This document shows positions 1,869 through 62,061 of a DNA stretch of 64,000 bases, piece by piece. The translations under genes were made by a program, and so were the position numbers. How positions within the stretch are numbered: position 1 is the first letter of the stretch; every line of letters begins with the position of its first letter. This DNA comes from Mobula birostris (Eukaryota), in contig NC_092374.1 in the NCBI RefSeq assembly GCF_030028105.1, positions 178,832,057 through 178,896,056 of the forward strand, given 5' to 3'. Below the pieces are notes generated by a model that was not told where the DNA came from, ran no database searches, and saw only the letters and a list, made by a program, of their open reading frames with translations.

Positions 1869-4451
1869 ACCTGCTGAGTTTCTCCAGCATTTTGTCAGTG
1901 TTGCAGGAAGAACTCACTGAATCAGGCAACGTCTGTAGAGGGAGGTAGTCCAGATAGTTTTGACCTAAAACATCAACTATCTGTCCATTTCCCTCCACAG
2001 ACACCGCCTAACCTTCTGAGTTCTCCCAGTTGCTTCTTTGTTGTTCACATTCAAGCACCTGCAGTCTCTAGTGCAAGGACTCGAGGGCCTGAGTTGTAGG
2101 GAACATTGGGCAGGCCAGGACTTTAACCCTTGATGTATAAGAGATTGAGGGGTGACCTTAGAGAGATGTATAAAATCACGAGGAGAACACACACAATCTT
2201 CTTTCCGAAGAAAGTAATAAAAAAAAACTAGCAGGCATAGGTTTAAAGAGAGGTGAGCAATTTTAAAGGGATCTGCAAGGTAACAGAGGGTGGTGTGTTT
2301 ATGGAATAAGTTGTATGAGAAAGTGTTTGAGGCAGGTAAAATAAACTATTAAAAAGACACCTGAATGGTTACAGAGATAGGAATGGTTTAACAGAGAACG
2401 GGGAAAGCAGAAGAGTACAGCATAGGAACAGGCCTTACAGCCCAAAGTGTCTGCGTAAAACAAGATACCAAATTAAACTAATTCTCTTCTGATTCCAACA
2501 GATCCATATTTCTCTACTCCTGGATATTCTTGTTTTTATCTAACAGTTTTTTAAATGCTGTTATTGGAATTGAATTCACCACCACAACCTCTAGCAGCTT
2601 GTTCTAAGAACCTACCATGCTCTGTATGAAAAATATGTCCTTTAAAGTTTCGCACTTTAAATCCATGTCTTCTACAACTTAAGATTTCTTCTCTGAGGAA
2701 GTGATTCCTACCATCAACCTATCGTAGTTTTATAAACTATGAGGTCTCCCAGCCTCTGCTGCTCCAGAAAATACAACCCAAGTTTACCAAAGTTCAAAGT
2801 AAATTTATTATCAAAGTACATGCTGTATATGTCACCCTATACAACCCTGAGATTCTATTTCTTGTAGGCATACTCAACAAATCTGTAGAACCATAACAGA
2901 ATCAATGAAGTATCTATGGAAATGAATCAACAGTCGATGTTTTGGGCTGAGACCCTTCTTCAGGACTGAGAAGGAAGGGGGAAAACACCAGAATGAAAAG
3001 ATGGGGGGGGGGAGGAGGATAGCTAGAAGGTGATGGGTTAAGCCATGTGTGTTAGAAAGGTAAAGTGCAGGAGAGGAAGGAATCTGATTGAGGGGAGTGG
3101 ACCATCGGAGAAAGGGAAGGAGGAGGGGACCCAGGGGGAGATGATAGGCAGATGAGAAAGGGCATTCAACCTATGTGCAAAAGACAACAAACTGTACAAA
3201 TAAAAAAGGATAGAGCTAATAATATTTATTAATTAAACTATATCGAGAACATAACATGGAGAGTCCATTGGTTGGGAACATTTCAATGATAGAGCGAGTA
3301 AAGTTATCCCCTTTGAAGGGAAGAAACTCTTCCTGAACCTGGTGGTGTGAGTCCTGAGGCTCCTGACCTCCTTCCTGATGGCAGCAGCAAAAAGAGATCA
3401 TGTCCTGGGTGATGGGAGTCCCCGATGATGGATGCTGGTTTCCTGCATCAGTGTTTCATGTAGATGTGCTCAGCGGTGGGGAAGGCTTTACCCATAATGA
3501 GCTGGGCCATATCCACTACCATCTGTAGGATTTTCCATCCAGCCTCTCCATATAACTCATCGCTCTAATCCAGGCAGTACCTGGTGAACATCTGCTGCAC
3601 CCTTCCCAAAGCCCTACCTTCTTCCTGTAGTGGAGTGACTAGAATTGCCCTTAGAGGAAGAATGTGGAGCCTTTGAGCCATTTAGAGGAATATAAGCCAA
3701 ACACAAGCAAATGGCAACAAAAGAGACTGCAGATGTTGTAATTTAGAACAACAAACAAAACACTGGTGGAACTCAGTGGGTCAGACAGCATCTGTGGAGG
3801 GGAATGGACTGTAAAAGTTTCAGGTTCAGATCCCTCAACTGGTCTGGAAGAGAAGGGGAAGCAATCAGTATTGAAAGGCAGAGGGAAGGGGTGGAGCAAG
3901 AGTTGGCAGGTGACGGGTGAATCCAGGTGAGGGGAGGGAAGTGACAGGCAAATGGGAAAAGCAGAAGTAGAATGGCATTAACAACGTGGAGTCAATGGGT
4001 GGAAGTGATGATGAGGTGAAGGTTTGGAACCTGACAGGAGAGGGAAGTGGAGCATGAAATAAAGGGAGGGGATCCAGTCGGAGGAGTGTGTGGGTGATAG
4101 GCAGATGGAGAGGGTGAGGAAAGGAAAGAGATCGAGCGATGGAGGGGAGCATGTCAGGAGGAGAGAGGAAAGCGACAGAGCCCTGCAGAAAGATCTTGGC
4201 ACAAATTGTCGACTGCACGTTTTTTCCATACATGCTGTCTGGCTGGCTGAGTTTCTCCAGCATTTTGTATGCATTGAAGGGACAGAGGGGGACCAATTAA
4301 GGAAACATCTGCGCCTTTTGTGTCTCAATGCCTACGCGCTGAGGTGACATCTGAGGTTCTCTTTGGAGATGCGACTATCTTAGATGAGTTTCTAGTTCAA
4401 CATGAGCTAAGCACATCAGAGCACTCTGATCCATACCGTATTGCAATGCAT

Positions 4452-4478
4452 GATTTTTTTTTGTTGTTTTGTTTACAG
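4452..4478 (+). promoter_or_regulatory. Splice acceptor for the ZNF coding exon
   Basis: T-rich tract GATTTTTTTTTGTTGTTTTGTTTACAG ending at 4478, 13 nt before ATG 4492. This implies an upstream exon, which I did not identify. Confidence 0.7.
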
Positions 4479-4491
4479 ACTGCATTGGGGG

Positions 4492-5664
4492 ATGGAGAGT
4501 CACTGGGAATGGACTGCACTTGACGAACGCCAGGGCTCCCAGCGAGGACGCCCCTCGGTTTCCCAGAGCAATTGCCCAGTGGCTGCGATGTCACGCCATT
4601 TCCTGACGGGGAAGAAGCCATACAAGTGTGAGCTGTGCAGCTGGACCTTTGCCCAGCCCTCCGACCTGGGTGCCCACCTGCGGATGCACACGGGTGAGAG
4701 GCCGTTCCGGTGTGAAGTGTGCGGCAAGAGCTTCAGCCATTCCTCCAGCCTGGTGAAGCACCGTCATGTCCACACTGGCGAGCGGCTCTTCCAGTGCAAG
4801 GTGTGTGAGCAGGCGTTCGCGCAGGCCACCGCCCTCCTGCAGCACTGGCGCCTGCACACGGGCGAGAAGCCCTTCCAATGCAAGACGTGCCGCAGCACCT
4901 TCACCAAGCAGTCGCAACTGGTGCTGCACCGGCGCAGTCACGCCGGCGGCCGGGGCTTCAGGTGCAAGGTGTGTGGCAAGGCATTCATGACGCCAGCCCG
5001 GCTGGCTGAGCACAAGTGCGTCCCCAAGGACGGGCGGCTTTTCCGCTGCGAGACGTGCGGCAAGGACTTCTGCAGCGCTGCCTACCTGGTGGTGCACCAG
5101 CGCCTCCATACCGGCGAGAGGCCCTTCCGCTGCGAGGTCTGCAGCAAAGCCTTCGGCAGCCTCTCCTACCTACGCATCCACCGACGCAGCCACGCCCAGG
5201 TAAAGCCCTTCCACTGCGACGTCTGCGGCAAGGTGTTCTGCAACGTCTCCTACCTCCGCATCCACCAGCGCAGCCACACGGGCGAGAGGCCCTTCCGCTG
5301 TGAGACCTGTGACCGGGACTTCTGCAGTGCATCCTACTTGGTGATCCACCGGCGCATCCACACAGGGGAGAGGCCGTTCCACTGCGAGGCCTGTGATAAG
5401 GCCTTCCTCAGCTCGTCCTACTTCCTCAAGCACCAGTGCGTCCCGACGGGGGACAAGCCCCTGAAGTGTGAGTTCTGCAACAGGGGCTTCACGCAGCTGG
5501 CACACCTCCTCAAGCACCAGCGCACCCACACTGGCGACAGGCGCTTCCAGTGCGACTTCTGCCAGCACTGCTTCACCTATTCCTCCTCCCTGGAGATACA
5601 CAGGCACACCCACTCCGCAGAGAAACCTCCCATCCTCCCTTCAAGCAAGCCAAAGAGTACCTGA
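4492..5664 (+). CDS. C2H2 zinc-finger protein, 12 tandem fingers (about 390 aa), no KRAB/SCAN/BTB domain visible
   Basis: Uninterrupted GC- and CpG-rich ORF with 12 C-x2-C-x12-H-x3-H type units and TGE(K/R)PF linkers. ATG 4492 is in good Kozak context (GGGATGG). The ORF-track start at 4441 lies in the intron. An upstream coding exon cannot be excluded. Confidence 0.93.
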   Translation: MESHWEWTALDERQGSQRGRPSVSQSNCPVAAMSRHFLTGKKPYKCELCSWTFAQPSDLGAHLRMHTGERPFRCEVCGKSFSHSSSLVKHRHVHTGERLFQCKVCEQAFAQATALLQHWRLHTGEKPFQCKTCRSTFTKQSQLVLHRRSHAGGRGFRCKVCGKAFMTPARLAEHKCVPKDGRLFRCETCGKDFCSAAYLVVHQRLHTGERPFRCEVCSKAFGSLSYLRIHRRSHAQVKPFHCDVCGKVFCNVSYLRIHQRSHTGERPFRCETCDRDFCSASYLVIHRRIHTGERPFHCEACDKAFLSSSYFLKHQCVPTGDKPLKCEFCNRGFTQLAHLLKHQRTHTGDRRFQCDFCQHCFTYSSSLEIHRHTHSAEKPPILPSSKPKST

Positions 5665-9559: not shown

Positions 9560-10050
9560 GGGAAGAGTGTAGGTGCTTGTTTGACACTGTTCCTGTGCTT
9601 ACTGTGAACACGGCGCAGCATATCACACAAACCAATCTTCTGTCCTTGGACTCACTTTACACCGCACGCTGTTGGAGCAGTGCTGTCAGGATAATCAAGG
9701 ACATGGCCCACCCAGCAAATACACTTTTCATCCCTCTTCCCTCCAGGAGGAGGCTCAGGAGCTTGAAGACTCGTACGGCCAGATTTGGGAACTGCTTCTT
9801 TTCAACTGTGATAAGACTGCTGAACGGATCTGGGCCATACCCTCCAAATATCCGGACCTGCCTCTCATTTTTTTTTTGCACTACCTTACTTTCGGTTTTT
9901 TTATTTTCTATTTATGATTTATAATTTAAATTTTTAATATTTACTATCAATTTGTAATCCAGGGAGCAGCAACTGCAGAATCAAATATCGCTGTGATGAT
10001 TGTATGTTCTAATATCAATTGTTTGGCGACAATAAAGTATAAAGGATATG
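9560..10050 (+). mobile_element. Rex1/Babar-like LINE 3' fragment
   Basis: ORF 9577-9924 (IIKDMAHPANTLFIPLPSRRRLRSLKTRTARFGNCFF..VIRLLN) is the conserved C-terminus. The same 3' UTR family occurs at about 19380-19620. Confidence 0.7.
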
Positions 10051-33077: not shown

Positions 33078-36000
33078 GCCTCCTGAGAGCCACCTGTCGC
33101 TTACGGGAGGACCAGAAGGCAGGCAGGGGGACGTGGAAGCTGAATGTTAAGCTGCTGACCCCAGAGAACATCGAGGAACTAGAGAAGGAGTACACAGGTT
33201 GGAGAACCTTGAAAGCCTTCTTTGATTCCCCGGTTCACTGGTGGGAAGCTACCAAGGAGAACATTAGGAGGTTCTTCATTCGCAAGGGTATCCAGAAAGC
33301 AAGGCAGGAGCAGAGGGAACTGCGTAAACTCCAGACAGAGTTGCAGCAACTTCTCCTTCTGCAGTCGAAGGGGGTGGATGTCAGGGAGGAACTGCGAGAG
33401 GTGAAGGGCCGGCAAGCCCAGAACCTCGCCGCCGAATCCTCCAAGATCATCTTCCGATCAAGGGTCCGAACCGTGGAGCAGGACGAGACGTGCTCACGCT
33501 TCTTCTTCCAAAAGGTGCACAGGGGGAGCTCTGTGATCCACAACCTTAAGGAAGAGGACGGCTCAGTCGCGACCTCGCAGACCGACATACTGAGGATCTG
33601 CAAGTCCTTCTATGCCGGTTTGTACGACGAAAAGGCCACAGAATCCACAGCCTCCCGCAACTTCCTGTCGTCTATCACGCAGGTCTTAGACGACGGTAAG
33701 CGGGAGAGTCTGGATCAGCCACTGACCCTGGACGAGCTGACAGGCTCCATCCGTTCCTTTGGGTCGGGTAAGACTCCCGGAAGCGACGGCTTACCGGCTG
33801 AGTTGTACTCGGCTCTGTGGAACTGGATGGGCCCAGACCTGCTGGAAGTGTACAACGCTATGCTTCTGGCGGGTAGCATGTCTGAGTCCATGAGGAAGGG
33901 CATCATCACCCTCATCTACAGGCAGAAGGGGGAAAGGGAGGACATTAGGAATTGGAGACCCATCTCTCTCCTCAATGTGGATTACAAGATCCTGTCCAAG
34001 GCTATCGCCAACAGGGTCAGGTCTGCTCTGGGACAGGTGATCCACCCGGACCAAACCTGTGCTGTACCGGGCAGGAAGATCTCAGACAGCCTCGCGCTGC
34101 TGAGGGACACCATCGCCTACGTGCAGGACAGGGGGGTGGACGCCTGCCTGGTCAGCTTGGACCAGGAGAAAGCCTTCAACAGGATATCGCACACATACAT
34201 GGCGGACGTGCTCTCCAAAATGGGATTTGGTGAGGGGATCCGGAATTGGATCAGACTGCTCTACGCAGACATCCGTAGTGCAGTCCAGGTCAACGGGTGG
34301 GAAACAGACAGCTTCCCCATCAGGTCTGGAGTCAGGCAGGGCTGTCCCCTCTCCCCTGTCTTGTTTGTCTGCTGTATAGAACCCTTTGCCGAGGCCATCA
34401 GGAGGGATGAGGGCATAAGAGGGGTGACGCTGCCAGGCAGTGGAGGGACCCAAGTGAAAACCTCCCTGTACATGGACAACGTCACCGTCTTCTGCTCTGA
34501 TCCGAGGTCAGTTCGCAGGCTGATCAGCATCTGTGAACAGTTCGAGCTAGCGACGGGGGCCAGGCTCAACCGCACGAAGAGCGAAGCCATGCTCTTCGGC
34601 AACTGGCCAGACCGATCCAGCGTCCCCTTCACCATCAGGTCTGACCACATGAAGGTGTTGGGGATCTGGTTCGGAGGGGCCGAGGCGTGCAACAAGAACT
34701 GGCGGGAGCGGACTGCCAAGGTGAAACAGAAACTGGGACTGTGGGGAGGGCGCTCCTTGTCGATAACGGGCAAGAACCTGGTCATCAGGTGTGAGGTGCT
34801 CTCAGGGCTGCTGTACTTGGCGCAGGTCTGGCCCGTCCCCCGCTCCTACAGCTTGGAAATCACCCGGGCTGTCTTCAGATTCGTCTGGGGATCCAAGGTG
34901 GAGCGGGTGAGACGGACCGCCATGCACAAGTCCCTGGACAATGGGGGCAAGAACGTCCCCAATGTCGCCCTCACCCTGATGGCCAGCTTCGTGTGTGGCT
35001 GCATCAGGTTGTGCGTGGATCCCAGATACGTGGGCACAAAGTACTACTATGTGCCCAGGTTCTACCTGTCACCCTGGCTATGAAGGATGGGTCTGGCCCC
35101 ACTCCCGCGCAACGCCCGCGTCAGCTGGTCGTTGCCCCCTTACCTGTCCTTCGTAGAAAAATTCTTCAAGACCAACGCATTTGACCACAGGGCCATCAGG
35201 CAGTGGCCGGCACGTAGTGTCCTGCAGGCACTGCAGGAGAAGGACGTGATGGACACAGTGGCGTGGTTCCCTGAGCAGACCGTCCAGTTCATCTGGCAAA
35301 ATGCCTCATTGCCAGATCTCACCAACAGGCACAAAGACCTCGCCTGGCTGGCAGTGAGAGGAGCCCTCCCAGTCAGATCCCTCCTGTACGCCCAGAACGG
35401 TTCCTCCACACCCCACTGCCCACGGGAGGACTGTAATGGGTTGGAGTCGGTGGCTCACCTCTTTGCACACTGTGGGTTCGCAAAGAAGGTGTGGAAGAGA
35501 ATGGAAGGGACAGTACTAAGATTCATGCCCAGCAGCTGCATTACCGAGGACTCCGTGATCTACGGGCTGTTCCCGGGGACGCACACGGAGACCAACATCC
35601 GGTGCTGCTGGCAGATCATCAATTCGGTGAAAGACGCTCTTTGGTCGGCCCGAAACTTGATGGTCTGCCAGCTGACAGAGATGTCCGTGACTGAATGCTG
35701 CCGACTGGCACACTCTCGTCTGCAGGAGTACGTTCTGAGGGATGCACTCAAACTTGGTGCAGCCACCGCGAAGGCCCGGTGGGGAAGGACCACAGTTTAA
35801 CGTTCATCACCCGTAGGAGGGGGAGAGGTTGGGTGGGGAGGAGACCTACCCTCATCAGCGGTGTGGACAGATAATCAACATGGTGCCCAAGGAGTGGGTG
35901 CAATTGTTAATTTGGGAAAGTATTAGAGCCATTGCCTGCCTTTATTGTTGAAAATTTTGATTGTTATTAAGTCTTAACTCTTGACCAAGGGTTGAGAGTA

Positions 36001-36339: not shown

Positions 36340-36930
36340 TATGAGGAGTGAATCTTGTAACAAGATTGTAGAGTAGTGGACTAAGCACACATCCCTGAGG
36401 TGTGCCAGTGAGTCATGGAGGCCGAGATATTATTACCAATCCGCTCAGATTGTGGTCTTCCAGTTAGGATGTCGAGTATCCAGTTGCGGAGGGAGCTACA
36501 GAGGCCCAGGTTCTGTAGCTTTTTGATCAGGACTGTAGGAATAATGGTGTTAAATGCTGAGCTATAGTTAATAAACAGCAGCCTGACATGGGTATCTGTA
36601 TTGTCCAGGTGATCCAAGGCCACTTGGAGAACCAAAGAGATTGCCTCTGCTGTAGACCTATTGTGATGACAGGCAAATTGCAATGGGTCCAGGTCCTTGC
36701 AGGCAGGAGTTAAATCTAGCCATGACCAGCCTCCCAAAGCATTTCATCACCGTAGTTGTGAGTGCTACTGGATGATAGTCATTAAGGCAGCTTGTACTGC
36801 TCTTCTTGGGCATTGATATAGTTGTTGCCCTTTTGAATCTGGTGGGAACTTCTGACTGTAGCAGTGAGAGATTGAAAATGTCTTTGAACTCTCCCACCAG
36901 TTGGTTGGCACAAGTTTTCAGAGCCTGACT
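36340..36930 (-). mobile_element. Rex1/Babar-like LINE RT fragment
   Basis: DIFNLSLLQSEVPT..YHPVALT; [26 protein letters not shown]. Confidence 0.7.
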
Positions 36931-37279
36931 AGGTACCCCATCGGGGCCTGCTGCCTTGCGAGGGTTCGCCCTCCTGAGAGACAGCCTCCGAGTCAGAGAT
37001 CACAGGGAAGTCCTGATGCAGGATATCAGCCCAGTACACTGGCACTTTCTTTCCCCCACAAATGCTGCTCAACCCACTGAGTTCCTCCAGCAGATAGTTT
37101 GTTGCTCGAGATTCTAGCATCCGCAATCTCTTGTGTAGGTAATCATGGAAGTTTGCTGTTTAACTTTGATATTGAAATTGTGGCTTGTCTATGATCCAAA
37201 TGTTTTAAGTCCCCAGTGCAGAATGCTATTGAAGGAAAGGGATATTACTAAAGGAGGCCCAAGGAAGGAAACACTGTGA

Positions 37280-37545
37280 CTGGCTCAGTGGCACAGTGTG
37301 TGGAGCTGCCTCGCAGTCTGAGCAATTTGAGTTTGATCTTAACCTCTGGTGCCCTCTGTGACTCCATGAGTTCCCCCAGGTGCTCCGGTTTCCCCCCATA
37401 TGGTTAGTTGCATGCTGTACATTGCTCCATCTATGCAGGTGGATGAGGGAATTAATTGGAATGTGGGGAGACTAAGTTATAGAGAATGGGATTGCTCTCA
37501 GAGCTAGAATAGACTCAGTGGGTCAAATGGCCTTGTTAAGGACAT
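37280..37545 (+). mobile_element. V-SINE copy
   Basis: TGGCTCAGTGGCACAG head, B-box-like GAGTTTGATCTT, and core GGTGCTCCGGTTTCCCCCCATA. Confidence 0.6.
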
Positions 37546-37620
37546 ACAGAAATAACATGCAATACTGTAATAGGAGTAGGGTGGTAGGAGTGAAAAAAGA
37601 ACCAGTAAAAACCAGCTGAA

Positions 37621-37724
37621 GGGTGGGGCAATGCTGAATAGGACTGTTGTGCTGGAAATTCCCTTCTTTTCTTATCACACATACTGCATGACACAATCAA
37701 AACCCAACTCTTTCACTTTCGTTT
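37621..37724. promoter_or_regulatory. Candidate NF-kB plus ISRE enhancer
   Basis: GT/GC box GGGTGGGGC at 37621-37629; GGAAATTCCC at 37654-37663 (reverse complement GGGAATTTCC, canonical kB); CTTTCACTTTCGTTT at 37710-37724 (reverse complement AAACGAAAGTGAAAG, canonical IRF/ISRE). Lies in apparently non-repetitive sequence. Confidence 0.55.
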
Positions 37725-39249
37725 GGCACAGGTTCAGTGCAGAAAGGGCTCAACCCAGCACTGTGTGTTTACCACGAACAGCACACCGCCTCTGTTTTGT
37801 ATCTGGGCTTGCCTTCTCCACATATTCACATTCCTGCCATTTTTGCTCCTTCTTTTCGCTTGGAGCTGGAGGAGTCACTATGAGTATCCCCTGCTCTCCT
37901 GGAGGATACCCGTCAGCCAGCCCAGGGAGGATCAAGACAGAGCTGGGGCAGACCACTTTTGTTGTCAAGTAATCACAGGAAGCCAACCGAAAACATTGAT
38001 CACATAAAGTCATACAGCAGAGAAAACAGACCATTCAGCCCATCTGGTCTATTTAAGCTAGCCTGCGTTTGACACATATCTTTCCAACCTTTTCCTATCC
38101 GTGCACCTGCCAAAGTTCCTTTTAAGTGTTGTTAATGTTTCTGCTTCAATCACTTCCTCTGGCAGATCATTCCATATACTGAACAGCCTCTTGGTGAAAA
38201 TGCTGCCCCTCGGGTTCCTATTAAGTCTCACCCCTCTTGCTCTAGACCTGTGTCTTCTCGTTTGTGATTCCCCAGCCTGTGACCCTAAGGAACCCTCCCT
38301 GTGATATATAAGGAGACAAAGTACAGGTGACCTTGTAAAAAAATGGACCTCAAAGATAATAATTGTTTGACTATCTGAGCCAATATAAAAATTTGTAAAA
38401 AGCCCGCGGACCAATAGGTTACATGTCATTCTATGATAATGAATGGGATCTACTTTTGAAGTTCAAGTTATCATTCAATCATACACAAGTACCTATGAAT
38501 ACATCCAAATGAAATGTTACTCCGGGGCCAAGGTGCAAAACACCATACCGACAGTTGTACACAGAAGAAGGCACACTTGGCATACATGGCCCATATTAGA
38601 TAGAAGTAAAATGCAGCCACACACAAAAAAAATAGTCCAGGTCCCTGAGTCCATGAATATTGCCGCTGTCTGCAGTCGAACAAAATGCAGGTTGTCTTCC
38701 ACCGAGTGAACACTGCAGAGCAGCACTGACATCAGCTTTGATGCCACACCACACTGCCTCTGGCACTAGCTTTGACGCCTCTCTCCTGCATGGCTGCAAG
38801 GAGGCGATACCAATGCTTGAGACCATGCAGCTCCCCTGCTGTGGGTCCCACCAATAAACTGCATTTGCAGCATTCCACACTACCAATGTCCAACAGGGCC
38901 CTGCGATCACAACAAACATGACTAAAACATCACTCGCTGTCAGACTGCAGACCACCTCCGCACACCAACTCTGATGCCTCTCTGTAACAGGCAGCAATAC
39001 AGTCTGCACCAAGTCCAGCTCCTTTTGTTTCTCCACCAAGCAACTCATTGATAGGGTAGATCTGCGGTATTCTAAGTTCATAATATCCAGCAGGGTCTGC
39101 AATCGTAGAAAGAACATTTAAAAAAAGACAATAACACCTTCGGTCGGCCCTGTAGAAGCCGCTGCATATGAGCATGCTGCCATCTAACCTTACAATCATT
39201 CAGAATTTGATTTTGTCACTTAAGTATGAAAAGACGTAGCTCACTCAGG

Positions 39250-49757: not shown

Positions 49758-50749
49758 TGGAGCAGAAGTCGGCCATTCAGCCCATCGAGTCTGCTCCGCC
49801 ATTTTATCATGAGCTGATCCATTCTCCCATTTAGCCCTACTCCCCCCACCCCTTCTCACCATAACCTTTGATGCCCTGGCTACTCAGATACCTATCAATC
49901 TCTGCCTTAAATACAAGGGGAACATGCGAGGAAACGTCTTCACTCTGAAGGTTGTGAGAGTGCAGAACGAGCTGCCAGCACAAGTGGTGCATGTAAGCTT
50001 GATTTCAATGTTAAAGGAAGTTTGGATAGGTACATGGATAGTAGAGGTTTGGATGGCTGTGGTCCTGGTACAGGTCAAAAGGACTAGGCAGTTTAATTGG
50101 TAGGGGACAGTCTAGATGGACTGAAGGACCTGTTTCTGTGCTGTACTTTGCAAAAAACTCCATAAGTCAGAAAATACACAAAAATTTCTGGCTACGGTAA
50201 CCATAACTCCACAATGATGCAAGGAATGGCAGCAAAATACACACAAAGCTGACAAGGAAGAACAAGTGGAGAGTGAGAGGAAATTTGTTCTGCTGTTCAT
50301 TAGAACAAATGTACATCCATAGAGTGATAGGGTACTAAGGCACAGAAATAGACCGTTCAGTGTTCATGCTGGAACATACTACTGAACTAGAATATGAGCC
50401 ATGATCTGGAACATAAGAAAATAGCAGCAGGATAGGCCAAGCCTGCCTTGTCATTCAGTATGGGTGATCTGCTCCAGGCCTCATCTATTTCTCTGTGTAG
50501 GACCTCTGCTCGCCTTAATAAATGGGGAAGCAGGTTTAGAAGGCTGGATTGCCCATTCCTGAAGCAATTTCTCATGTCCTTAAAAAAAGAGTACAAGGAA
50601 CTGACAGTGTAAATCGTCTTCCTTCTCAAAAGAGGGCACAAAAGACATACCAGAAATTGAGAGAGAGGGGGAAATAAAGTACTACTGAGAGCCATAGTCA
50701 TACAGCATGGAAGTGGATCCTGTATGGATTGACCCTATCTGTGCACTTC

Positions 50750-50980
50750 ATGCTTTTAAATACCTCTATAAGATCACCCCCAGTCTCATATGCTCCAATG
50801 TAAAAGGTCCCTACCTGCTCAACCTAACTCCATAACTCAGTCTCCGGAGTCCAAGCAGCACCCTGGTAATTCTCCTCTGCACTTTTTCCGGTTTAACAGC
50901 ATATTTTCTATTCTGGGGTAACCAAAACTGAACACAATATTCCAAATGCGACCTCACCAGCGTCTAGTACAACTTCTAGT
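50750..50980 (-). mobile_element. Degenerate CR1 fragment
   Basis: Minus frame KLY*TLVRSHLEYCVQFW. Confidence 0.65.
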
Positions 50981-51339
50981 GTACAATTTACCAAAAAAAA
51001 ATTGAACGCGATCCAAAACCATAAATTCTCCGACATTTAAAATGTTTCGATCTGCAACATTAATTGTGTTTATCTCTCTGTAGACACGGCTTAGGAATTT
51101 TAGGAGATTCTGTTTTCAGTTCTGGAAATCCCCTGGATTCAATTTCCTCCCCTACTTTACAATTTTGAAACTGCTGCAGTAGGGACGATATTGTTCTTGA
51201 GTCTCCAATATTCTCTAAATTCTGAGCATTGAAAATTGAAAATAAAGAAGACTGACACATTTAGGCCTCAACTGAAGTGATTGTGAGATTAACAATATGT
51301 TCAGCTTCAATCACACCGTAAATTGACTTTGGGGCCGCA

Positions 51340-51720
51340 GATTCTGTCGCAGGTGGATTCAGTTTCACATTTGTTTTGTTGTTTATAACAATAAATGTGT
51401 TCAGATTTGACAGGATTTCGTCAATATCAATCTAAGTACTGTTCCGGGATTTACCGAAGTTTCAGGTTCTCCTGCGGTAAGACCGGAGTCGAAAGCGCAG
51501 GCCAATTGAACTCTGAGCGATGACAGGGCTATGTTGGTTTCAGGGTGTAGGAACAAAAGTCACTTGGACTGGAGCCTGAATCGGTAATTCCGGGAATCCG
51601 TCAGATTTCTCTCTAAGCGATTTGGGAAATTAGTATAAAGATATAGCATGCGCATTTGCGCAGCTGAACGGGAGGGCGGTGACTTGTGTCAGTAACAGGC
51701 TGTGTGACTCATCGGATATT
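51340..51720. promoter_or_regulatory. CpG-rich regulatory element upstream of B2M (enhancer or divergent promoter)
   Basis: GAS TTCCGGGAA at 51588-51596; NRF1-like GCATGCGCATTTGCGCA at 51646-51662; GC box at 51674-51679; AP-1 TGACTCA at 51705-51711; ISRE-like CAGTTTCACATTT at 51360-51372. Local CpG enrichment. Confidence 0.5.
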
Positions 51721-52639
51721 TATCCCAGGTCTGCAAACCTTGTGTTCCCTGTAAGAAGAAATGCAAAACAAGAAATGTTTAGAGCAGTTTTTAACATTAA
51801 TATTGGGTAACCAGACCATTGCCAAAGGATAAACCCTAGCTGAGATTTTTTTTTTAGCATCATAGTTGGGTAACCGGGGTCATTGCAAAAGGATAATAAC
51901 TAGGTGAGAGTTTATAACATAAATGTCTAATTTAATGTATAATTCGAGTTTATTGTCATATGCGCAAGTACAGATATACACAAGTGCAATAAAAGCTTAT
52001 TTGTAACAGTATTACAGGCAAATAGCAACAAAACATAAATTCTACAAGTATGCACATACGACAAAAAGTCCATTTATCCTTGGATAATCTGAATCATATT
52101 TCGTTTCCGTATTTATCTTCCTATTATGTCTTTTTCTCTCTCGATTTGCAGAAATATCGTTTTGTATATGATGTTTATTTTATCGTGTAAGTTTCATAAA
52201 ATGCATGTTAATTTAAGTTCATGTCAACTTATGTACTGTGCTGCTGATGCAAACAATCTAATATTCATGCCATTTGTACATTTTCAGTACATTTGTACAT
52301 TTCAAGTTTATTGTCACAGGAGACTGCAAAATGGTAACTACCTAGTTAATTTTTTAGCATTATTGTGGTATGATCTGAGGCATTTTAAATGGATAAGGTG
52401 TAACTGAGCTCTGACGAGTAACGGATATACTGAATAAGCTCACCGTCCTATGAAAACACTAGAATTGGCTAGAATCCAACTGCCTCGGAATAATTATTCC
52501 ACAAATACATGATTTATGAAATTCCAGCAAATCACTCTAATGTTTTGCTTGAATGTTTCATACTGTGCCTAAAGTAGATTTGTCAATGCTGTGACACAGG
52601 CAGTCGGAATTGCAGAGTGACTTTCCTTATTAAATTTTC

Positions 52640-52912
52640 TTAAGAGATCGCCGAGGGTCGCGTCTGAACGATCCGCCCTCGTTTCCCGGTCCGCAAACTC
52701 TACCGAGATCTTTCACCCGGAGACTGATGATGCGTATATTCTAAATATTACCATTGGTTGTGCCGAGGCAAAAGGGCGGAGTGCCGTTTTCTTATTGGTA
52801 CCGGGCGGCCGGTTGGTTTCGCATAATCTGAGGGTGCAAGCGCGAGTGATCAGTCGCGGAGACCAAGAAGCGAATTTCTTTCTAGTAGCTGGAGTGTGCC
52901 GTGTGTCCGAAA
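52640..52912 (+). promoter_or_regulatory. B2M proximal promoter / CpG island with MHC-type X-Y module
   Basis: X1-like CCCGGAGACTGATG at 52716-52729 followed by ATGCGT; Y box ATTGG at 52753-52757; second ATTGG at 52794-52798; GC boxes at 52774 and 52803. Directly upstream of the signal-peptide ATG. Confidence 0.75.
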
Positions 52913-52964
52913 ATGATGCTACGTGTTCTGATCCTGCTCTCTCTCGGGTTGATTTGTGCGGCGA
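52913..52964 (+). CDS. B2M: Beta-2-microglobulin exon 1 (signal peptide MMLRVLILLSLGLICAA, phase-1 donor)
   Basis: Hydrophobic leader followed by a perfect GTAAGT donor at 52965. The leftover A joins the GT of exon 2 in frame (AGT, Ser). Absent from the ORF track. Confidence 0.88.
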
Positions 52965-53399
52965 GTAAGTAAATTTATAAACTCGAAATTTTGCAGCTGC
53001 TGGAAATACTGAGTGATTGAAATATTGATACATTTAAGTGTCTGGAAGAACTCAGCAGGTCAGCCAGCGTCTGTGGAAAGGAATAAACCGTCTATCTTTC
53101 GGGTCGAGATTGATGAAGGATCTCAGCCCGAAACGTCAACTTATTCCTCTACGTAGATGCTACTTGACCTACTGACTTACTCCAGCACTGAGTAAATTTG
53201 TCGTTTTGGGTCTGTAGGGATTAGGCAGGGTTGGGAAAATTCTCGGGTCCTATTTGGCCCTATACTCCAGTGCCCGCTCACTGAAAGAATACCCTAGGTC
53301 CGGATTCTTAAGTCTTCGTATCAAAGGCGACCTCCCCATTTACGCTAACGCCCCAAGACCTGTGTCTGGGCTTTATTAGCCTTCGCTCAAAGAGTCCTC

Positions 53400-61782: not shown

Positions 61783-62061
61783 GTGTAAGTTCACCACAGG
61801 TCAACGTCTACACCTACAAACCCATCGTGACAGGTGAAAAGAACGTTCTCCTTTGCCATGCCAAGGAATTCAGCCCACCCAACATCAAGCTGGAATTGCT
61901 GCAGGATGGTGCTGCGATACAAAACACCAAACAATCTGACATCAGCTTTGAACCAAACTGGAAATTCAAATTGACCACTTATGTTGAGATCTTCCCCAAG
62001 GAAGGAGCGCAGTATGCCTGCAGGGTGCTGCACAATGGCGATACTAAAATTGTTAAACTTG
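61783..62061 (+). CDS. B2M: Beta-2-microglobulin exon 2 (Ig C1 domain)
   Basis: CTGCAG acceptor at 61782 and GTGAGT donor at 62062; 279 nt, phase 1-1. VSSPQVNVYTYKP..NVLLCHAKEFSPPNIKLELL..QSDISFEPNWKFKLT..YACRVLH..KIVKL carries both Cys residues and the SDxSF and W motifs of B2M. Confidence 0.96.

Follow-up and report, generated by a model that had tools for sequence, protein, structure and literature searches.

In mammals, MHC class I and B2M genes are under the established control of NF-kB (Enhancer A), ISRE/IRF1, and the SXY enhanceosome, and in teleosts, ISRE and GAS elements operate in promoters of the MHC pathway (PMC7281430, PMC7573153, PMC4374748). For cartilaginous fish, a paper on MHC organisation covers the linkage of B2M, with no mention of promoters or enhancers (PMC10751288). 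Here, we analysed a window of 64 kb from Mobula birostris (the whole stretch of DNA presented above, 64,000 nucleotides), which contains B2M and, upstream of it, an NF-kB (kB) site paired with an ISRE. Sequence comparison indicates that this kB/ISRE stretch is very probably an ancient, putative immune-responsive control element, and we put the probability that it serves as a distal NF-kB/IRF-responsive enhancer of B2M at roughly 0.55. We found no earlier description of the element in the literature searched.

Like Enhancer A and the ISRE of the mammalian MHC class I/B2M system, the element places both site types side by side in association with B2M, and the same locus carries an S-X1-X2-Y promoter (PMC7281430, PMC4374748). 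By analogy, it may work like the kB plus ISRE half of mammalian MHC class I/B2M control. Unlike the mammalian Enhancer A-ISRE arrangement, which lies within about 200 bp of the start and beside SXY, the ray and shark element is found 6-15 kb away; it also differs in the 46-bp gap between the two sites, in the presence of TGAC and TTGGCA blocks, and in its IRF-E-like ISRE without a GAAACT end. With 15 kb between the pair and SXY in Mobula, and 6-10 kb in the other species, the arrangement is not a proximal Enhancer A-ISRE-SXY module.

A second point of reference is the IFN-beta enhanceosome, in which PRDIV (ATF/Jun), PRDIII-I (IRF), and PRDII (NF-kB) are contiguous within about 50 bp. As is generally known of that system, the shared features are a TGAC motif (ATF/AP-1-like), a GAAAGTGAAAG-type IRF site, a kB site, and fixed spacing. 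However, the order in the present element is kB-TGAC-IRF over about 71 bp rather than a contiguous ATF-IRF-IRF-kB array, and it is distal rather than promoter-proximal and lies beside a different gene. Composite kB/IRF inducible elements are already known, and what is notable here is the depth of conservation. Immune enhancers are generally thought to evolve fast, and deeply conserved non-coding elements are mostly located at developmental genes. With vertebrate developmental conserved non-coding elements, the stretch shares the form of a short non-coding block whose position and orientation have long been retained; unlike them, it lies beside an immune effector gene and carries motifs for stimulus-responsive factors, with copies sought in elasmobranchs only. 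Finally, like the MER41 and mouse B2 SINE enhancers (PMC10229128), it is distal and combines IFN-type motifs near an immune gene with TE-rich surroundings, whereas it differs from them in being single-copy, older than the flanking TEs, and conserved between sharks and rays.

A kB/ISRE pair on a single-copy island

An earlier reading of the window from its sequence only had reported a kB site and an ISRE separated by 46 bp, with a GT/GC box upstream, about 15 kb upstream of B2M. All of these coordinates proved correct (Table 1), and the distance measured to the ATG at 52913 is 15.2 kb. The same reading had called the ISRE exact. This description is accurate for the core consensus GAAANNGAAA, which is matched by GAAAGTGAAA in Mobula, Pristis, and Stegostoma and by GAAACTGAAA in Narcine, but not for the full ISGF3-type consensus GAAANNGAAACT, in place of which the distal site reads GAAAGTGAAAGA; it is of the IRF-E/PRDI type, lacking the ISGF3-type ...GAAACT end.

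Table 1. Positions of the kB/ISRE element, its parts, its surroundings, and its orthologous copies (window coordinates unless a locus is named).
Feature	Position	Strand	Description	E-value	ISRE to B2M start
Old SINE-like repeat tail, left flank	37265-37555	+	Depth up to ~2000 in relatives
Single-copy island, 420 bp	37556-37975	+	Whole length conserved among three batoid orders
Core conserved non-coding element, ~140 bp	37615-37753	+	Contains kB, TGAC, ISRE, TTGGCA; four-species core profile
GT/GC box GGGTGGGGC	37621-37629	+	Mobula and Pristis only
NF-kB consensus site	37654-37663	.	Plus GGAAATTCCC, minus GGGAATTTCC; fits GGGRNWYYCC
TGACACA, AP-1/ATF-like half-site motif	37689-37695	+	Candidate factor, from consensus alone
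ISRE / IRF-E	37710-37724	-	Plus CTTTCACTTTCGTTT, minus AAACGAAAGTGAAAG; GAAAGTGAAAG type
TTGGCACAGG block adjoining ISRE, NFI half-site-like	37723-37732	+	TTGGCA and AGG invariant in four species
LINE 3' tail, right flank	37976-38430	-	Minus-strand ORF with LINE C-terminal motif
B2M proximal S-X1-X2-Y module	52692-52757	+	Presumed target promoter; aligns in six species
Promoter boxes	S 52692-52703; X1 52711-52724; X2 52725-52732; Y 52753-52757; second Y 52794-52798
B2M exon 1, signal peptide	52913-52965	+	Starts at ATG; nearest downstream gene start
Mobula birostris copy	37556-37975		Reference		15.2 kb
Pristis pectinata copy	L002 3916-4352		Island	1e-156	5.9 kb
Narcine bancroftii copy	L004 1087-1469			6.5e-60 (nhmmer)	8.8 kb
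Stegostoma tigrinum copy	L005 115-241		Shark	1.3e-10 (nhmmer)	9.8 kb

How often such a pair arises by chance was estimated from 1000 dinucleotide-preserving shuffles of the 64-kb window, with kB defined as GGGRNWYYCC. A strict kB site and an ISRE core lay at most 100 bp apart in 9.4% of the shuffled windows, and a kB site with a stricter ISRE pattern in 4.3%. The exact kB decamer has an expectation of 0.25 per window; GAAANNGAAAS was seen four times against 1.8 expected, while strict kB sites are not enriched (7 seen, 8.3 expected). Since 4-9% of shuffles contain a pair, the motif pair alone is weak evidence and only mildly unusual in one genome, and thousands of such kB/ISRE pairs are expected genome-wide. 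As we read these comparisons, the evidential weight comes from conservation across species and not from the motif pair in a single genome.

The pair had also been described as lying in a small, apparently unique island among TEs. To examine copy number, we aligned contigs from four runs of related species (coded C, D, E, and F) on 37100-38400, at a likeness of at least 80%. Over 37540-37979, relatives C, D, and E showed depths of 7.6, 8.7, and 6.4, equal to a single contig, whereas the TE flanks reached depths from hundreds up to 37,000 in the relatives, the latter at 38112-38199. Given a single-contig depth (6-9) between flanks piled up to 10^2-3.7x10^4, the island is single-copy; its uniqueness is upheld in three relatives, and the hypothesis of a multi-copy repeat, which the sequence-only reading had listed among the refutations of its enhancer candidate, fails. 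There is no second copy within the 64-kb window. With this depth and one match per locus, the island does not behave as a member of a TE family.

The surroundings of the island include, besides the two tails in Table 1, further LINE reverse-transcriptase ORFs at 33209-35800 and 36381-37126. Both TE tails are common to Mobula and Pristis and absent beside the Narcine copy, and the island is therefore older than its flanking TEs. A solo LTR or TIR element was rejected, as short repeats occur at chance level only and there are no terminal repeats or target-site duplications.

Several other identities of the island were considered and rejected. Between Mobula and Pristis, indels of 1 and 8 bp disrupt the ORFs that could represent a coding exon; nothing in the 'MSIPCSP...' ORF resembles a signal peptide, and the island ORF at 37631-37969 gave no match as a protein query against homologous contigs. 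A structured RNA is contradicted by a consensus core fold of -2.5 kcal/mol with no covariation, and an Rfam scan of 36500-39000 returned only a chance sub-threshold snoRNA match. A relic class-I-like promoter was also discarded: the sequence downstream of the ISRE lacks both an X2 box and a Y box, and 37771-37783 resembles X1 only loosely. Neither a TATA box nor a CpG island is present downstream in the island, which has few CpGs. Moreover, none of the island's words occur in the RNA-like runs of the species, a result that weighs weakly against a promoter and is silent on an inducible enhancer.

Conservation across rays and a shark

Using an elasmobranch B2M protein profile, we retrieved B2M loci with 10 kb of upstream DNA from five species, namely Pristis pectinata (L002), Rhinoraja longicauda (L003), Narcine bancroftii (L004), and the sharks Stegostoma tigrinum (L005) and Heptranchias perlo (L001); the comparison of loci leaves out Mobula hypostoma, Hypanus, Heterodontus, Scyliorhinus (two species), and Carcharodon. 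An nhmmer profile built from Mobula and Pristis was then searched against these loci. Every copy recovered lies on the B2M strand, collinear with the promoter, and there is exactly one per locus (Table 1). In Pristis, a longer match (L002 3764-4682) includes both TE tails, with 73% identity over 934 bp. For Rhinoraja and Heptranchias, the searches did not find the element in the 10 kb of upstream DNA, and in these two species it is either located beyond 10 kb or dispensable.

The extent of conservation varies with distance. Between Mobula and Pristis, the island is 77.7% identical and the shared old TE tails 76.6-79.6%; because the island does not exceed the tails in this pair, constraint becomes visible only at greater distance, that is, in Narcine and the shark. 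Mobula and Narcine are 71% identical over the core and 66% over the right part, and conservation among batoids reaches about 220 bp downstream of the ISRE. Sharks and rays separated roughly 250-300 million years ago, and in Stegostoma only the core of about 140 bp persists, with conservation ending right after the ISRE/TTGGCA block; here, Mobula and the shark share 56-63% identity in the core versus 37-47% in the flanking parts. Upstream of B2M, the only blocks that align between Mobula and Narcine outside repeats are the island, 52451-52530, and the promoter, and between Mobula and Stegostoma, BLAST aligns only the promoter and the profile the island core. The element is thus a non-coding, single-copy sequence conserved in orthologous position beyond the reach of neutral DNA. 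Taken together, these comparisons suggest that it constitutes the core of an ancient conserved non-coding element, not derived from a TE, 6-15 kb upstream of B2M.

Within the core, the kB site reads GGAAATTCCC in Mobula, while Pristis, Narcine, and relatives C and D have GGAAATCCCC. This difference falls on the R position, and the consensus is therefore kept in these species (minus strand GGGGATTTCC). At position 37660, relatives C and D both carry a C, which the comparison with Pristis shows to be ancestral, the T of Mobula birostris being derived. The Stegostoma site, GTAAATCCCC (GGGGATTTAC on the minus strand), is a 9/10 match with one consensus mismatch. The ISRE is TCTTTCACTTTC in Mobula, Pristis, and Stegostoma and TCTTTCAGTTTC in Narcine; its core TTTCANTTTC is kept in the four species, the sole change being C>G in Narcine at an N position of GAAANNGAAA. 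Hence, except for the one kB mismatch in the shark, substitutions occur at degenerate positions of the consensus. The spacing between the two sites is similarly stable, at 57, 57, 56, and 57 nt in the four-species alignment (Mobula, Pristis, Narcine, and Stegostoma). A TGAC motif is found at -22, -22, -22, and -20 nt from the ISRE in the same species, as TGACACA, TGACACG, TGACATA, and TGACTCA, the last of these (Stegostoma) being a perfect TRE.

Columns that are invariant in all four species concentrate on the motifs. The ISRE holds 9/10 such columns, the maximum of the island, and the kB site 8/10; a score of 9/10 is also reached by the 10-mer that begins at 37723, in the ISRE/TTGGCA block. 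All 10-mers of the 420-bp island with at least 8/10 invariant columns fall on the kB site or the ISRE/TTGGCA block. Overall, 17 of 20 motif columns are invariant; the corresponding figures are 38 of 119 for the remaining core (Fisher p = 1e-5) and 81 of 400 for the remaining island (p = 3e-9). This test is independent because the motifs were picked from Mobula alone before the other species were seen. The sequence-only reading had proposed conservation as a check on the pair, and the kB site and the ISRE indeed emerge as two conservation peaks across three batoid orders and a shark. Selection appears to have been strongest on the NF-kB site and the IRF-type ISRE, 56-57 nt apart. The GT/GC box fares differently: it is present in Mobula as reported, but it is conserved in Mobula and Pristis only and not kept in Narcine or Stegostoma.

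The close relatives add little to this picture, since constraint cannot be demonstrated at a divergence of only 3-6%. Across 37680-37740, relative D is unchanged, and relative C has at least one private change within 37661-37740. In the most distant run, F, 2 of 40 sampled island words were found, all within 37661-37740 (2 of the 4 words there).

Three further observations concern the DNA around the core. In 37741-37866, 17 of 126 positions distinguish relatives D and E from Mobula birostris, compared with 6 of 185 in 37556-37740; at most of the 37741-37866 differences, D and E agree with Pristis, indicating that these changes arose on the manta lineage, in clusters. A stretch of 30 bp at 37749-37778, with a forkhead-like TGTTTAC and a RUNX-like ACCACG, is identical in Mobula and Pristis and mostly kept in Narcine; its conservation does not extend to the shark. 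The aligning block at 52451-52530 comprises 80 bp about 400 bp upstream of the B2M ATG and is 76% identical to Narcine L004 8735-8814.

A candidate distal enhancer and its alternatives

If the element is a distal NF-kB/IRF-responsive enhancer of B2M, Rel/NF-kB and IRF factors would bind side by side at the element after infection or cytokine signalling, the IRF being IRF1-like given the GAAAGTGAAAG type of the site. The bound factors would then recruit co-activators, and the element, acting as an inducible enhancer rather than as a promoter, would loop to the S-X-Y promoter of B2M and raise its transcription. B2M is the presumptive target, assigned through proximity alone, and since the locus is MHC-linked, the element might instead serve a more distant immune gene.

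The same conservation could mark a cis-regulatory element that is bound by other factors or serves another target. Such an element could be a constitutive or lineage-specific enhancer, with ETS/PU.1-IRF composites, AP-1, or NFI in place of the named factors, or it could act on another MHC-linked gene. We consider this unlikely, as the substitutions respect the degenerate positions of exactly the kB and ISRE consensus and B2M is the nearest promoter in 4/4 species although the distance varies from 6 to 15 kb. Nevertheless, conservation proves constraint and not which factor binds, the TGAC and TTGGCA blocks are as well conserved as the named motifs, the shark kB site has its mismatch, and both the proximity-based assignment and the MHC linkage of the locus (PMC10751288) speak for caution about the target. 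It is less probable still that the pair belongs to an alternative upstream promoter, with a non-coding first exon or lncRNA start, and is promoter-proximal to an unannotated inducible transcript. Although kB plus ISRE modules classically lie within about 200 bp of transcription starts (PMC7281430) and in batoids a further 220 bp or so downstream of the ISRE are conserved, shark conservation stops after the ISRE/TTGGCA block, and neither a TATA box, a Y box, nor a CpG island follows. In addition, the island's words are absent from the RNA-like runs, and no gene is called at the element in any annotated genome.

A chance co-occurrence of two short motifs in functionless, neutral single-copy DNA agrees with the shuffles (a pair in 4-9% of 64-kb windows, 7 kB sites against 8.3 expected) and with a Mobula-Pristis identity equal to that of the flanking TE tails; it is nevertheless very unlikely, because the element is kept in Narcine and the shark, where neutral intergenic DNA no longer aligns, and because conservation peaks on two motifs preselected from Mobula (p = 1e-5). 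Even less credible is an origin as part of an old TE or solo LTR carrying kB/ISRE sites in the manner of the MER41 or B2 SINE enhancers. TE-borne IFN enhancers are known (PMC10229128) and the island sits between two TE fragments, yet its depth in relatives is that of a single contig at 80% likeness or more, each locus has one collinear copy, terminal repeats and target-site duplications are absent, and the flanking TEs, which the island predates, are missing from the Narcine copy.

Should the conserved element be active as a distal enhancer of B2M, the ancestor of elasmobranchs would already have had hard-wired control of the MHC class I pathway by inflammation and interferon. The 140-bp fragment is directly testable for the regulation of antigen presentation in cartilaginous fish.

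The proximal promoter of B2M

The identity of the gene downstream is clear from exon 2 (Ig domain, 61783-62061), whose translation is 100% identical to the NCBI entry 'beta-2-microglobulin-like [Mobula birostris]'. In every species looked up, the 10 kb upstream of B2M contain no further called gene. Within the window, a single additional cellular coding sequence was recognised upstream of B2M, a C2H2 zinc-finger exon of nine or more fingers (4441-5664, plus strand).

In both sharks, a perfect ISRE that fits the full ISGF3 consensus is located about 40 bp upstream of the S box (GAAAGTGAAACT in Stegostoma, L005 ~9717-9728; GAAAGCGAAACT in Heptranchias, L001 9423-9434). In 4/4 batoids (Mobula, Pristis, Narcine, and Rhinoraja; window 52600-52700), this proximal ISRE is eroded to a half-site, and Mobula has GTGACTTTCC at this place, one mismatch from a kB site. 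The half-site and the near-kB sequence bear out the earlier statement that kB/ISRE matches in the proximal promoter of Mobula are no more than weak. The accompanying proposal that the strong pair had been displaced from the promoter does not hold, since Stegostoma has the distal element plus a perfect proximal ISRE. Because this shark carries both modules, the distal element represents an old additional module rather than a displaced one, and the rays appear to have eroded the proximal ISRE later.

A bolder reading combines these observations: an NF-kB/AP-1-like/IRF module of fixed geometry that predates the split of sharks and rays would be the distal inducible switch of B2M, to which interferon control was handed over as the proximal ISRE of rays decayed. 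We regard this reading as conceivable but rather unlikely. If true, the element would be a rare deeply conserved stimulus-responsive enhancer, a class usually thought to turn over fast. The contrast between the perfect proximal ISRE of sharks and the eroded one of rays is a natural experiment in which redundancy and hand-over between promoter and enhancer elements can be studied.

Other sites lie between the element and the gene. A second strict kB site, GGAAATCCCC, occurs at 51124-51133, 1.8 kb upstream of the B2M ATG, and is collinear in Pristis (L002 8380); the block around it (50733-51235) gives repeat-like extra matches. A palindromic GAS, TTCCGGGAA (51588-51596), ends a 62-bp block at 51535-51596 that is 82% identical to the skate locus (L003 8695-8755), which has its GAS at L003 8747; Pristis also has a GAS (TTCCCGGAA, L002 ~8593). 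From this alignment, 51535-51596 seems to be a second conserved element upstream of B2M. In Heptranchias, a tandem-repeat array with units of about 22-33 nt (GGAGTGGACTGAGTGTAAAGCC-like) occupies L001 9640-9975, between S-X-Y and the B2M ATG.
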